Source of the DNA: Lepidodermella squamata
Taxonomy: Eukaryota > Animalia > Gastrotricha
DNA length: 64,000 nucleotides
Assembly (NCBI GenBank): GCA_047495785.1
Contig: JBLDXI010000024.1
Coordinates: 4,278,001 to 4,342,000 of the forward strand
Reading direction: 5' to 3'
Every line of letters starts with the position of its first letter. Position 1 is the first letter of the stretch. Below, piece after piece: positions 33,617 through 64,000 of the stretch. The position numbers and the translations under genes were made by a program. The notes beneath the pieces were generated by a model. The model ran no database searches. It was given only the letters and a program-made list of their open reading frames with translations, and had not been told where the DNA came from.

Positions 33617-36600
33617 TCACGGATGCGTGGGATAAGGATGTAATTGACCGCTGCCATCATGTTTCTTCAGGTCGTACATTCCACGAACAGATCCGACTGG
33701 CAGACTACCAGTCTGCTTTTTGCTTGGGAAAAGCACGCCCAATTGCAAGGCAATTTTTCCCCCGCCTAGGAACAGTTTAGGGTCTTTGGTCATCCTAGCA
33801 ATGATGTTGGCTGCAGGAACCAGCCGCCCGGCAGGGTTCGTCAGTCTTCGCAGACGTAATGCACGCAATTTCATGTCCAACCAATGCATTAGGCAACGTT
33901 CACGTTTTGCAGCTCGGTCGTAACTATCGAATTCGATTCGCGATTCAACAAATCGCAAAAACCGATGGATTGAAAGCTCCACTATGAAATAAAGAAAATG
34001 CCATGAACAGGCTATCAAAAATTCTGCAGGGACTTACATTTCGCTAGATTGCGTTCCCCGACAGGTCTGAAAACTGGAGCGGAAGTCTTCTTTGGGAAAT
34101 CTCCAATCAAAGTGAACTTTAGCCCCTCTGCTATGTAACCTGACAGCTCGTGGTCCCAGTTGGTATGTTCTTTAACGTTCCCAGCTACGTGGCTATAAGT
34201 AACCGATATTATTGTCATGAAGACCTGAACAGCCAAAAACATGACGATTGTTGAATAAGCCATGCAGAAAAGCATGATGTAACGCGAGGTGAAGCTCAGC
34301 GACATCAGGGACCCAGTTACTCCGATGATATTTTGAACCAGGGTCATTATGGATTCGGTGAATGTTTGAAACTCGTCGCAAGTCGTATTTAGACTCAGAT
34401 AACCCAATTGGGCAAACAGTAATGTGATGACGACGAAAGTAAACAGGAATGAATATATATCCGCCTTGCCTTTGGAGAGCGTTCCCAAGAAGATACACCA
34501 GTACTTGTTGAAGGTGAGGTGGCGGAAAAACAGCAGCATGGTCATGAAAAAAGTTATGCCGTACAGATTGGCCATCAGAGCTTCCCAGTTGACTAGAAGA
34601 TCGAAGTTCACGAATGAAGTCCTGTCAGTCTGGAGTCGGGTAACAGCTTTCATCACAACGACAATTCGAGCGATGAACAAGCCAACGATCGCCAAAGCTA
34701 TCAATATCTGACACAGCTCTAACAAGTTCCATCCATCTTTTCGGAATTTTTTGATGCCTTCTTTCTTCATCTTGATTAAAATCTTGACCAGATGCGAGAA
34801 AACAAGCAAGATCCAGATGCCTTGAATGGCGAAGATGAAGATTGAACTGGCTCCGATGTATTGATACAGCTGGAGAGGATACATCCTCGCATGATACGTC
34901 ATGCCTCCAGCACTCAGGGCTTCAAAAATTACTTTCACCGCGATGAACAAGTTGACCTGAGCATTGAATAGGACCATGTCGACGAATAGGACTGAAGTTG
35001 AATTATCTAGCCATCTCCTTGACTGAAGCGCATCAACGAAAGCTTGGGCTTTCACAAGATTTACAGGTAGATCGACGTAATACCCGCCGCTGGTGTAGGT
35101 TGCCTGCCAACCTGAGTAGGGAATTCCACTGTCTTCCCGATGAATCCATGGAGCCTGCTCAGTCGTTACATTCTCTGTCACCCAAGCAGTTGCATCTACG
35201 TTAAAAGTCCAATTGAAATTCGAAAACTGCCTGGTTTCGGTGTCCGCTCCCACGCCAAGTTGGCCAACGTATTGGTTCTGACACTTAGTAGAATTCAACA
35301 CGAGTAGATCTGTGAATTTCTTGACATACTGAGGAACCGGGGAAGTCTCCAACAGACATGGGGCTGGAATATGACAACCCTTTCACATTAACCTTATGAA
35401 ATACAAAGCCTACTTACCAGAACGGACTCGTTGTTGTCTCAAACGAACAGGCCCGAGTACTACAACATCGTGATTAAGAACTTGGTAGATGTTTTTCACA
35501 TTGAATTTCAAGCCCTTGCTCAACTGGTTGGCAGTGAAAAACTGCGGCAGAAGGTTGTTATTCAGCCACGAATAAATCTGGCTGTAGTCATTGATCACAC
35601 CCATCTGAGGTACAGAAGGCATCTCTACCAATGGCTTCAAGTCCCCAATTTGTTGATAAGCTAGCCTATTCTGCGTAGCTGATATGACAATAGCGATTGC
35701 AACAACGTAAATGATGTGGTGAAAAATCCCTCCGATGATGTTCCGCATGCGCTTGAAGAGCTCCGATTTCTTATTGGAGCTGTTCTTCGAAAATGCCATC
35801 TTGCCAATGTCGAGACCGTCATCGGGCAGAGACAGCAAAGTTGAACTACAGACGGACAACAATGCGACCTTGACTGTTTGAATGAGAATGATGTCCTGAG
35901 CAACGCTCATGACCATTCCACTGAGCCACTGCAACGATTTCTCCTTGCCCCACATCAGGCTGTACATGACGATGAAGAAGGAAGAGGTTCCAACACAACC
36001 AGCGACAACTAGAATAAACTGCATTTGGCAATGGGCTGATATATGGAGATTTACTTACGAATCCATGCAATGATAGCGCAGTAGTATGGAAGCTGGAATG
36101 GCTTCTTCTCTTTGCTGTCGACATCTCTTCGCTTAAATCCCAGAGCCACGTTGAAAATGGTTGTGTATTGGCTATTCTCAGCCGATCGACGTCGAATTCG
36201 TTTGAAAATGAAGGCCATTATTGCAGTTGGAGGGATGACGATGACACATCCGATGAAGCTAGTGTAGACAGTAAACCAGGACAGGCGGAAGAATCCACCG
36301 ATATTGACGCCTACTCGGGGCGATTTACTCTCTTTTCCGTAGAACATTGCATTCACCAGCATGGCCATGAATAGAGCACTAACTACACAAGCTAGCCGTT
36401 CGCATCTGGTCCAGTTACTTGGGAGGGGACGCCTCGTGATGGATAGCCATGGGTGAGAGCTGAACAAACCAACTCGCGAATGAGAGCTGACCAAGTACTT
36501 GAAGCCTTTGATCTCATCTTCCGTTGCGAGCTCTTTGAATTTCATCTCTCCACTTTTCATGAGAGATTTGGTCAAGAAAACAAACTTTTGCGCCTTCTCA

Positions 36601-39600
36601 ATGTCAACCACGACAACTTTATCGATTTGCATCTGAAGAGGCTTGCTGCCATGTAGCGACCTGAATCGGCTGTGCAGTCGAATTTCAATTGCCTCGATGT
36701 GGCCAATAGTAAGAGTGGTAGTCATCATGAAATTGGCCGGTCTCCTTCCGTTGAAATTCGATTCTCTCTCGCAATCTTCGAGAACTCGCCAGTTCGTATC
36801 GCTGATATCACCGTAAGCTCGTATTAGAACCACAGGCTTCAGATGATAATTTTTTACGCCGAAGTGATCGACTGAAACGAGGTATCTGTGTCTTTCGTAA
36901 GGCTTGTTGCTCTTCAAAGGCATAAATGCCCACTCCTTGATGTCAAGCTTGTCAAACCGCCAAACAATTATCGCTCCAACTATGAAGAAAAGCATAGTGG
37001 CGACTAAAAACGCGAGAACAAAGTTGTTATCCGATACAAGCGTTGCAAAATTGGTGAAGATGTCTGAGAATTCAATGGTGCTGGGTGAGATGAGGAGATC
37101 CGCTCCAAAATCGCCAAAGTAAGAGGATTTGAAAGTAACTGCCGATTCAGTCGAACTGGGATCAAGTTCGAAATCATCATCAGAGCTCGTTTGAGATGCA
37201 TCGCGTCGTTTCCTTGAATTCGTGTTTCGCGCCTTGGCGAATCCGACCTTGAGATGGTAACCGTAGCATCGTTGTAGTTCGCAAGCATCTGATGGCAAGT
37301 CGTCAATCGTTGAGAAGCTAGAAAAATCCTTTTTCGCAAAAACGTGCATCTTGAATGAGACATTTGCTTTTGAAGAAATCCCTTGAATCCTAACGAATTC
37401 CTGCAATGCTGATTGTGGAATGACTATTCTCAATTCGACATCAGTATTGTAGCTTGAATTGAGTCCTCCAAGGCTAGCATTTACACTAGTGCTGACACTG
37501 GTTTGACTGACATTGATAGACCAGGTATAACTCTTGATAGTGGGGGTGCTGTTCAGCGATAGATACGCCGTGTAGTTGTACTTGATGACCGGGAATATTA
37601 GCACATAATTGCCGGAATCCGGAGAAAGAGGGAATATAGCCAGCGATCCCAGTGTATCCGCATTGGTGGTGACATCGCATGTTATCTTGCTCACATCGCA
37701 CTGAAACTCAGCCTTTTGACGGCTTAGCATTGCTGCCTCGGGGACAACAGGTTTTCCAGTAATTTTTATCGGATAACCCTTCTTGAGCACGAGCTCTCTC
37801 TTCTGATAGAGAACCTTGACTGAAATGGTCGGCATGTTGAACGGCTGCTTTGGGTCGAGGACGTTAACAATGTAGGCGGTTACTAGCACGGTGACTGTAT
37901 CAGAATCTCCAATCGACACCCCCGAAGCTTTGGGATCTATCAATTCAACAGCAGATGTGGCGCTGGGGAAAACCACAGCTGCATGGACTGTATCGAGCCT
38001 CAAGTTCGCCAGCTTCTTGGCATCAATGACCAATAGAGCCACAGAGAAAAATTTGCCATTGAATGAAAAGTTTTTGTTCGTTTTATAATTCGCCTCCACC
38101 ATCTTAAGAATGCTGTCCATCGTTTTATTGAAATTGCCGTAAAGCATGGACACCTGAAAAGGAACGATCAGACGACATTAATTAGGAGGCATACAACTGG
38201 AAACTATAACCAACTTGATCATTTGTGAGCGCCGAATTACTACTCGTCAATGCAGTCGCTTCTGGGTCAGTCCGGCATTTATCGTTTTGACCAGCAAGGT
38301 CGAGCGATTGCGAGCTGGATTCGTACACTGCAAACATGGCGGAACTTGCTGCCGAAGCGTATGCCACTGTGGTATTGACAACAACCTCTGGGGTCATCTG
38401 ACTCGCTAGATCTGCGTAAATCGCCGCAGCGGAAGCCATATCAGCCATGAATGCAGTAGACGTCGGAGCTAAAGCTATCGCGCTTTCAGCCAAACCTAAG
38501 CGTGATGAAGCCTCGATGACTACGGCAGTTATAGGACTAACAGCCGCTATCAAAGTCTGGGGCAGCATGGATGCTATGAATGCAATCGAAATGGCTGGCG
38601 TTGGAACATCTTTGCTCAATTTCTCTGAACAATCTTTGTCGGTCCAGTTTCTAGTGCAGGTGCAAATGTTGGGTTGCGCACACGTTCCTCCATTCTTACA
38701 ACCACCCAAGCTGGAACATGATGCTATTTTTGAGAAATTATTTGCAATGCAAAATATAAATTGCTGTAGCTCACGATAGATACAATTTGAATAAGTCCAG
38801 CCCGAACCGCAGTTGCATTCATCGACATCAATGCAGGTTCCACCATTGTAGCAAGAACCCAAGTTCGAGCAGTTAGCATTTATCGATATCTGACATGCTA
38901 TTCCACGCCAATGGCTCGAGCAGGTGCAATTGTTAGGCGCCGAGCAAGTGCCGCCATTTAAACAGCCTCCAATTGATGAACAATCGGCTGGGAATAGAAG
39001 ATACAGTTATTGCGAATTTCGACGGTGACCATCACAGTCATTTTCAAAGACTATTAGCTTTTGAAGTTGGACTGTTCACGATTCAAGCATTGAAACTTGG
39101 ATATATTACCTATCAAATCATGCAACTTCATAACTGATTTAAGTTAAGTAAAGCAATTCAACCTTGATCGCAAATAGAACCTAGCCAGCCATTTTTACAC
39201 GAGCAAGTGTTCGGCGCTACACACGATCCACCATTTGTACAGGCTGGCGAACACACAGCCACAATAGCTATTGTTACAAGAATGTTACCACAGCAGGCTA
39301 AGTTAAAATGATATTTTGACTTACGCGTGCTGCAGTCAGACCCAGTCCAACCTGCTGCACAAGTGCAAATGTTCGGAGCTGTGCAAGATCCTCCGTTCAA
39401 GCAAGCAGGAGAACAGATAGCTGAGAAATCCACGGGGTTACATTAGCGAAGTAAATATAGCCTTTATTTATACCGGTTGAACAATTGGAACCAGTCCAGC
39501 CTACTGCACATGTGCAAATGTTGGGACTTGAACACGAGCCGCCGTTTAAACAGCCTCCAATTGATGAACAATCGGCTAGGAATGAAAAAACGATTCGATA

Positions 39601-63800: not shown

Positions 63801-64000
63801 TTACGAAATTCCGATAGAGATTTGTGGCTTACCCATTCAAGTTCGCCAAACTGGAATACCTGAAAAATGAAATCAATGAAATTGTAGAGCTCAACTTTTT
63901 TTATTGGTGAAAAGCCATGAGAAATGAGAACTGTCAAAGTACCAGTACAGTTGTTTAGTGCGAATAGTAATAATTGGAAATAATACGACTGTAAATTCTT
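51843..64000 (-). CDS. Giant PKD1-like gene, copy 2 (5' end beyond the right edge): FReDs, Sushi, PAN, about 19 EGF, RKRR, PLAT, 11-TM region, extended cytoplasmic tail
   Basis: ORFs 52517-53860, 53898-54632, 54547-56667, 56670-57266, 60258-61826, 62048-62515 and 62754-63755 are collinear paralogs of copy 1 with largely the same intron positions. No disabling lesion was noticed. Confidence 0.85.

Follow-up and report, generated by a model that had tools for sequence, protein, structure and literature searches.

Two collinear polycystin-1-like genes with a fibrinogen-related, EGF-rich ectodomain in the gastrotrich Lepidodermella squamata

Gene structure of the two copies

We analysed a stretch of 64,000 nucleotides (nt) from the gastrotrich Lepidodermella squamata (GenBank assembly GCA_047495785.1, contig JBLDXI010000024.1, positions 4,278,001 to 4,342,000 of the forward strand), hereafter called the window and numbered from its first letter. 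It contains two collinear paralogues, copy 1 (49343-33617) and copy 2 (64000-51843), both on the minus strand, composed of long open exons and sharing the same order of domains. Each joins a head with fibrinogen-related domains (FReDs), a PAN/apple domain and Sushi modules, through a stalk of EGF modules, to the transmembrane (TM) part of a polycystin-1 (PC1, PKD1)-type protein (Table 1). A previous interpretation made from the letters alone (the sequence-only reading) had proposed two such genes, and Pfam scans of the exons of both copies bear this out.

The gene models were obtained with a splice finder of our own, which uses dynamic programming with codon log-odds, GT-AG introns and frame keeping, and its output was curated by hand. 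For copy 1 this resulted in 39 exons with a coding sequence of 11,115 nt, encoding 3704 amino acids, in which all introns are GT-AG and internal stops are absent; its start is an ATG right behind an in-frame stop, and its reading frame ends with the stop codon at 33617. The 5' part of copy 2 is cut by the end of the window and its splice model, which runs down to 51843, comprises 26-27 exons. Both models share the C-terminal ending ...YPTH.

Between the copies, exons are conserved and introns cannot be aligned. The amino acid identity is 65-92% and the ratio of nonsynonymous to synonymous substitution rates (dN/dS) is 0.09-0.26 at a dS of ~0.4-1.5, with values of 0.22-0.26 for the ectodomain vs. 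0.09-0.12 for the membrane part. Both copies are thus under purifying selection, and in the comparison of copy 1 with copy 2 no positive selection is detectable overall in the ectodomain, its dN/dS being well below 1. Two traits of copy 1 would fit a decaying paralogue (an unprocessed pseudogene) in a family of which only other members work: its first FReD lacks the C-terminal half, with a repeat-bearing intron of 1.86 kb at that spot, and its C-tail exon has 194 nt vs. 362 nt in copy 2. However, neither a stop nor a frameshift occurs along the 11.1 kb of coding sequence, the dN/dS range given above holds for all parts tested, and the stalk of copy 1 has undergone a recent in-frame duplication of a cassette of five EGF modules with all phases retained. 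We therefore regard decay of copy 1 as most improbable.

Each copy very probably represents one gene, as judged from the exon structure. In the exon 38723-38215 an EGF module is fused to the Ala/Ser-rich stretch found ahead of the GAIN domain; this exon enters in phase 1 with the EGF module and lacks a start codon, so that it must be spliced to upstream exons. The intron between it and the GAIN exon occupies an identical position in both copies and measures 61 nt (copy 1) or 59 nt (copy 2), and since the largest intron from the Sushi exon to the GAIN exon is 231 nt long, a terminator and a promoter could not be accommodated between them. The alternative would be two genes, i.e., one for a secreted FReD/PAN/Sushi/EGF protein and, close behind it, another for a PKD1-like protein whose ectodomain is short, or else an internal promoter giving a PKD-only isoform that starts near the Ala/Ser-rich exon. 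This would be in line with a Met and a hydrophobic stretch inside exon 38723-38215, with the gene callers on related metagenome contigs, which start the PKD protein just before the GAIN region, and with the lack of transcripts linking the head and membrane parts. It seems, nevertheless, improbable, in view of the phase and the EGF-first composition of this exon and the small gaps described above, the stalk exons, which are all phase 1-1 and free of stops, and the identical layout in two copies as divergent as these. Furthermore, the related metagenome contig L001 has an open frame (EGF, LamG-like, mucin, Sushi) that ends 48 nt before the PKD open reading frame (ORF), and the start assigned by the caller in L001 is probably an artefact of prokaryote-style gene calling. 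An extra internal start may exist besides the single gene.

Table 1. Positions of the two gene copies and their parts in the window, with the evidence for each.
Feature	Positions	Strand	Evidence
Copy 1, whole gene	33617..49343	-	curated splice model, 39 exons
Start codon, signal-peptide-like segment and 3 EGF (3 exons)	48879..49343	-	hydrophobic residues 10-28; EGF Cys pattern; weak EGF_2 match
Discoidin-like (F5/8 type C-like) module (2 exons), then Cys-rich EGF-like piece	48153..48754	-	Atlas lead
FReD1, N-terminal half	47672..48094	-	Fibrinogen_C E 2e-30, profile positions 4-127 of 221
Long intron, 1861 nt, (TGATT)n-type and inverted repeats	45811..47671	-	stops in all frames
FReD2, complete, single exon	45139..45810	-	Fibrinogen_C E 2e-42, positions 3-220 of 221
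FReD3, three exons	44346..45085	-	Fibrinogen_C positions 83-219 in last exon; tblastn with FReD2 residues 2-230
FReD4, PAN/apple and 2 Sushi, one exon	42738..44036	-	Fibrinogen_C E 2e-25; PAN_1 24.1 bits; Sushi 15 bits
EGF stalk, 23 of 24 modules	38775..42506	-	Pfam EGF families; exon phases; splice sites
Last EGF and ~135 Ala/Ser-rich residues, one exon	38215..38723	-	weak EGF match; dN/dS 0.20 vs. copy 2
GAIN domain (beta subdomain) before TM1	37086..38153	-	AlphaFold model and VIA-align
Polybasic RKRR (furin-type R-x-K/R-R) in GAIN loop	37203..37214	-	conserved in alignment; low pLDDT
Degenerate GPS position	37101..37136	-	blastp vs. amphioxus GPS protein; 32-row alignment
TM1	36960..37022	-	hydropathy peak 2.96; helix in model
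PLAT domain	36519..36926	-	Foldseek and VIA fold matches
TM2-TM6 and start of polycystin/TOP domain	35418..36518	-	hydropathy; Polycystin_dom positions 4-56
Polycystin/TOP domain and PKD channel (TM7-TM11, pore)	34038..35363	-	Pfam; phmmer
Last exon, C-terminal tail	33617..33810	-	end conserved with copy 2
Copy 2: FReD2-4, PAN, 3 Sushi-like, ~19 EGF, GAIN, 11-TM part, longer C-tail	51843..64000	-	Pfam; splice model

Domains from the head to the channel

The membrane part is what identifies these proteins. The PKD1-type succession of TM1, PLAT, TM2-5, TOP domain and channel that had been noted earlier is upheld by Pfam, by fold and by hydropathy, and the whole part is collinear with PKD1-like proteins along its full length. 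Hydropathy gives 11 peaks after the GAIN domain (residues 2682-3579 of the copy 1 model), with a twelfth at residue 3323 that falls inside the TOP domain. The ORF 34015-35352 of copy 1 matches PKD_channel (PF08016, E 8e-25) and Polycystin_dom (PF20519, E 2e-21), as does its counterpart in copy 2 (52517-53860), and the start of Polycystin_dom lies in ORF 35410-36024 of copy 1. The exon of 700 amino acids that encodes the GAIN, TM1 and PLAT part has no Pfam match whatever, the PLAT profile included. The PLAT domain was recognised by its fold (residues 410-545 of an AlphaFold model of this exon), with VIA Z scores of 12-14 vs. lipoxygenase/lipase PLAT domains and Foldseek matches with an E value of 1e-6, also to the complex of PC1 with polycystin-2 (PC2), and in addition by alignment to the Pfam-positive PLAT domain of an amphioxus protein (P0109, discussed below). 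In phmmer searches the exon with TOP domain and channel matches polycystin-2 chains with E 7e-42, PKD1L3 (7d7e_A) with 4e-25 and PC1 with 1e-13. The filter reads I-G-V in both copies vs. L-G-D in polycystin-2, so that the filter Asp is replaced, and a Ca2+-selective homotetramer is therefore unlikely. Solved complexes of this kind, PC1-PC2 and PKD1L3-PKD2L1, have a 1:3 stoichiometry. By analogy, we infer that the window protein would be the odd subunit, i.e., the only one of PKD1 type, in a heteromeric TRPP channel formed together with PKD2-type partners.

The absence of REJ domains and PKD repeats, also stated in the sequence-only reading, was confirmed, since the Pfam profiles PF02010 (E up to 5) and PF00801 match no exon. 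The REJ scan does work on other PKD1-like proteins (it matches P0018 and P0083) and the copy 1 model has no unassigned stretch that is long enough for a REJ domain.

The ~355 residues before TM1, which had escaped notice in the sequence-only reading, have the fold of a GAIN domain. The AlphaFold model, built from a 32-row alignment, has a mean predicted local distance difference test score (pLDDT) of 76.8, and its residues 1-356 match eight GAIN structures from adhesion G protein-coupled receptors (GPCRs) in VIA-align with Z scores of 8.1-12.0 (CD97 and CELSR1 12.0, BAI3 10.2, and GPR126, GPR110, latrophilin-3, GPR56 and GPR97 8-10). The ~135 Ala/Ser-rich residues encoded by the preceding exon are possibly the helical GAIN subdomain A. 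There is no Pfam match to GPS in any exon of either copy and the GPS position is degenerate in both. Where P0109 reads C-L-C-D-H-L-T-A-F-G-A (the canonical C-x-C-x-HLT-x-FG), the Cys and the HL/T are missing from the window copies, from four metagenome proteins that form a clade with them and from a group of Lingula and scallop proteins in the 32-row alignment. The self-cleavage motif of adhesion GPCRs, HL/T(S), is thus absent, with the catalytic triad position replaced, and in the same alignment 15 HLT-bearing proteins fall on one side of a branch (SH-aLRT 97). The alignment indicates that GAIN autoproteolysis has been lost in the clade of the window proteins.

In all six members of this clade (both copies and the four metagenome proteins) a polybasic motif, RKRR, RRKRR, RRKKR or RRRR, occurs ~25 residues before the last GAIN strands, in a loop with a pLDDT below 50 at model residues 311-326. 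The retention of this motif at 30-46% identity suggests that it is functional, and, judging from motif and model, a proprotein convertase probably cuts the GAIN domain here in place of self-cleavage. Basic runs (RRLL, RVKR, RRRR and QKR) also precede the last GAIN strands in the GPS-less PKD1L2-like rows of Lingula and scallop, in different alignment columns. Judging from these rows, a basic site may have replaced self-cleavage beyond the clade of the window proteins, too.

The long EGF stalk proposed earlier was confirmed, with 24 modules in copy 1. Pfam EGF families match all small exons between 42400 and 38700, and nearly all modules are single exons of 96-114 nt, separated by introns of mostly 40-60 nt. 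With the three modules near the N-terminus, copy 1 has ~27 EGF modules overall. The duplicated cassette mentioned above (five EGF exons with their introns, ~760 nt) is present twice at 90-93% identity; the array was missed by Tandem Repeats Finder, with its period limit of 500, and the cassette was seen by direct repeat search. This duplication explains why copy 1 has more stalk EGF modules (24) than copy 2 (~19), and shows that the length of the stalk is still evolving by cassette duplication.

In the head, Pfam detects Fibrinogen_C in ORFs 47649-48110, 45086-45832, 44319-44711 (together with two upstream exons) and 42706-44028 of copy 1, and the same head domains in ORFs 62754-63755, 62048-62515 and 60258-61826 of copy 2. 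Four FReDs had been counted in copy 1, of which FReD2, FReD3 and FReD4 proved complete and FReD1 is an N-terminal half only. Its P subdomain was sought in the 1.86-kb intron downstream and not found there. In this intron, where the second half of FReD1 is missing, inverted repeats of 36 nt with 86% complementarity enclose (TGATT)n-like direct repeats (46055-46431), an arrangement that may be a small foldback or an insertion like a miniature inverted-repeat transposable element (MITE). The PAN/apple domain also claimed for the head is confirmed in copy 1, where PAN_1 scores above the cut-off, and scores 17.8 bits, below the cut-off, in copy 2. For the Sushi modules, two in copy 1 and three Sushi-like ones in copy 2, the Atlas feature search gives good support (0.95, with 198 features shared), and their Pfam scores are 15-17 bits, which is below the cut-off. 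For the proposed discoidin-like domain the Atlas search gave a weak lead, i.e., a match of the first exon to F5/8 type C clusters (0.94, 142 features), and Pfam gave no match; a sequence comparison of this N-terminal module with the discoidin domains of P0109 did not produce a match either.

Relatives and possible function

A search with the 700-amino-acid exon against 1.8 billion representative proteins revealed that the nearest relatives of the GAIN-TM1-PLAT-TM part are four metagenome proteins (P0001, P0002, P0003 and P0005), with 31-46% identity in this search and 29-46% in all comparisons of this part, followed by PKD1L2-like proteins of Lingula anatina (e.g., XP_013397161.1), with ~21-24% identity overall and 30-33% locally, and then by proteins of scallop, hemichordate and amphioxus. 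The Lingula and the four metagenome proteins likewise lack a Pfam-detectable REJ domain as well as the GPS residues, and the metagenome proteins share the polybasic site. In contrast to the window copies, however, no FReD was found in any of them. In contig L001 (ena:ERZ27333047:k141_63249) the frame upstream of the PKD ORF of the closest relative (1-1398, plus strand) encodes EGF, a LamG/pentraxin-like stretch, a long Thr/Ser-rich mucin-like run and one Sushi module. This upstream frame is different and, therefore, the same membrane core carries another head in a related organism. A word-index homology search with residues 440-1430 of P0001 returned, besides P0001, a single beetle protein.

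Within the top 150 relatives of the membrane part a fibrinogen domain occurs only in P0109, from amphioxus, and P0083, from Dimorphilus, to which a further search added P0168. P0109 (CAH1271112.1) and its paralogue P0168 are ‘PKD1L3’ models of Branchiostoma lanceolatum which, like the window protein, combine discoidin, Fibrinogen_C and EGF domains with a PKD1-type membrane part. They differ in having one FReD, a C-type lectin domain, one or two EGF modules, a canonical GPS and a Pfam-detectable PLAT domain, and share 18-27% identity with the window protein. P0109 belongs to the HLT-bearing group, far from the clade of the window proteins, and the fibrinogen head was, therefore, probably gained independently. 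The Dimorphilus gyrociliatus protein DgyrCDS14777 (CAD5126713.1, P0083; 5543 amino acids) carries a C-type lectin domain, PAN, six discoidin domains and a partial Fibrinogen_C on a PKD1-type protein, but it possesses PKD repeats and REJ, its single FReD is partial and it has no EGF stalk. All these amphioxus and Dimorphilus proteins are uncharacterised automatic gene models. The sequence-only reading did not recognise the architecture as described, which holds for the literature searched, where we found no paper that joins fibrinogen domains with polycystins, but not for gene models, given the two paralogues in Branchiostoma and the one in Dimorphilus. What is new is a PKD1L-type receptor without REJ that combines a head of several FReDs, borne on ~24 stalk EGF modules, with a non-cleaving GAIN domain in which a polybasic site is conserved.

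Expanded and shuffled ectodomains, including lectin-bearing ones, are known in the PKD1 family, which is said to be defined by the REJ domain, with human PKD1L3 (hPKD1L3) as the accepted REJ-less exception (PMC1934368). Vertebrate PKD1L3, which acts with PKD2L1, is similar to the window protein in having 11 TM segments, a domain at the GAIN/GPS position, PLAT following TM1, TOP and channel domains within TM6-11 and a lectin-type module, and no REJ (PMC1934368). In comparison, the window protein has a far larger FReD/PAN/Sushi/~27-EGF ectodomain, a degenerate GPS with a polybasic site and a channel closer to that of polycystin-2. The sea urchin proteins SpREJ1 and SpREJ3, with C-type lectin, SUEL and EGF modules, belong to a set of 10 genes with shuffled ectodomains and have been tied to Ca2+ entry (PMC1934368). 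They are, as here, PKD1-family proteins with carbohydrate-recognition modules but, unlike the window protein, they are defined by REJ, and SpREJ3 is cut at its GPS; a fibrinogen domain in SpREJ proteins is not reported in PMC1934368. As for the FReDs, the best matches of FReD2, FIBCD1 and tachylectin-5A, are acetyl-binding lectins, the former membrane-anchored, but both have a single FReD and no channel. A tenascin-type identity was rejected, as fn3 matches are absent, the EGF repeats follow the FReDs instead of preceding them, and the protein runs on into an 11-TM part.

Taken as a whole, the explanation that we favour, with some confidence, is that each copy is a single-gene, REJ-less PKD1L-type 11-TM protein of ~3,300-3,700 amino acids, with a lectin-type head, that serves as a subunit of a heteromeric channel. 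Its head (the discoidin-like module, three to four FReDs, PAN and two to three Sushi modules) would bind an extracellular ligand, the likeliest being an acetylated glycan or a glycoprotein of the matrix or cell surface, and binding or pulling would be transmitted along the 19-24 EGF modules of the stalk to GAIN domain and channel. A convertase cut at the exposed loop with the RKRR-type site would leave N- and C-terminal fragments that are held together non-covalently, and the PKD1-type subunit would pair with PKD2-type partners in the manner of PC1-PC2 and PKD1L3-PKD2L1. The link of lectin-bearing PKD1-family receptors such as SpREJ1 and SpREJ3 to Ca2+ entry (PMC1934368) provides a precedent.

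Sensing of glycans or microbes, as suggested by the domains of the head, is plausible. The best solved relatives of FReD2 are FIBCD1 (E 1e-34) and tachylectin-5A (2e-32), with angiopoietin-2, tenascin and MFAP4 (E 1e-30 to 1e-34) and the ficolins matching nearly as well as FIBCD1; in the alignment to FIBCD1 the GaWW...C...NLNG core is retained and the D-x-D stretch is matched only at its first Asp. These matches and the partly retained D-x-D would also suit a single gene whose head is not a pattern-recognition lectin but that of an adhesion receptor or matrix-tethered mechanosensor, with tenascin-/angiopoietin-like FReDs and an extensible stalk, or of a REJ-like gamete-recognition receptor. 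PKD1 proteins are involved in mechanosensing and sperm-egg signalling (PMC1934368) and, in Platynereis, in hydrodynamic sensing (PMC6294549), and the ectodomain evolves faster than the membrane part, as in gamete or immune receptors. However, its dN/dS is well below 1, discoidin-like, PAN and FReD modules stacked in this way are typical of carbohydrate-binding assemblies, and nothing here separates such roles from glycan sensing; glycan or microbe sensing, matrix- or adhesion-based mechanosensing and gamete recognition would all fit the domains observed. We consider a non-lectin head distinctly less likely than the lectin-type receptor subunit outlined above, although clearly more probable than the two-gene alternative.

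Several points weigh against this receptor subunit. The splice finder favours open frames by design, and the splice donor before the GAIN exon is weak (GTTGGT). The only public run that contains this DNA (X1) is genomic, with its introns covered at word depths of ~104-368, typically ~120; splice junctions were sought in it and none were found, so that the splice model is without RNA support. In copy 1, the missing part of FReD1 is the ligand-binding P subdomain, and the lectin activity of FReD2 is uncertain because only the first Asp of the D-x-D of FIBCD1 is retained. No PKD2-type gene is present within the window. The evidence for convertase cleavage consists of motif conservation and low pLDDT only. 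The adhesion GPCR hB2 is reported to have a furin site between its CUB and TSP domains, outside the GAIN domain (10.1101/2023.03.12.532270), and was dropped as a precedent for a furin site inside GAIN for that reason; no other precedent was found.

A further step would be to regard these genes as a lineage of ‘pattern-recognition ion channels’, in which a multivalent lectin head of fibrinogen, discoidin and PAN domains would bind microbial or environmental glycans and gate a TRPP channel directly through a stalk of variable length and a convertase-cut GAIN domain. We consider this doubtful, less so than the two-gene alternative but more so than a non-lectin head. If true, FReDs, so far acting as lectins in soluble or anchored form, would have their recognition coupled directly to Ca2+ signalling. 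Polycystin-1-type proteins are TRPP receptor subunits mostly without a known natural ligand, whereas the modules of this head have a well-studied binding chemistry, so that ligands can be sought directly with glycan arrays or by microbe binding. In addition, a GAIN domain without self-cleavage and with a conserved convertase-type site makes it possible to test, on a natural example, whether the mechanism of PKD1 proteins and adhesion GPCRs requires cleavage in itself and not autoproteolysis. The gene pair also exemplifies rapid domain shuffling and change of stalk length in an expanded family of invertebrate receptors.

Neighbouring genes in the window

A plus-strand ORF of 612 amino acids (31170-33008), ~600 nt downstream of the stop of copy 1, contains a reverse transcriptase domain (RVT_1) and a C-terminal GIY-YIG nuclease domain, the build of a Penelope-like retroelement, and a second one (28751-30754, plus strand; 667 amino acids) has a MACPF (perforin-like) domain (E 4e-12). 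Right at the window's beginning (52-738, minus strand) lies the N-terminal half of another FReD (Fibrinogen_C positions 3-101, E 3e-24), the remainder of which is beyond the edge. The ORFs 14388-15254, with a sub-cut-off C-type lectin match (E 0.002), and 16018-16728, with Sushi, suggest more mosaic extracellular genes nearby. Two long ankyrin-repeat ORFs are present at 20738-24095 (minus strand). In L001 and in another metagenome contig, L002, the PKD-like gene has an ankyrin gene behind it, too; synteny of this gene in the window and in L001 was, however, not supported, as there was one weak match only and orthology was not clear. At 2474-5546 (minus strand) an ORF of 647 amino acids matches the ligand-binding domain of Cys-loop receptors (Neur_chan_LBD, E 3.5e-14), with a ConA-like/Laminin_G_3 match (E 3.5e-4, sub-cut-off) in the ORF just upstream. 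Judged by these domains it may be another ion channel gene with a lectin-like head, and amphioxus gene models that combine discoidin or C-type lectin domains with Cys-loop domains exist.

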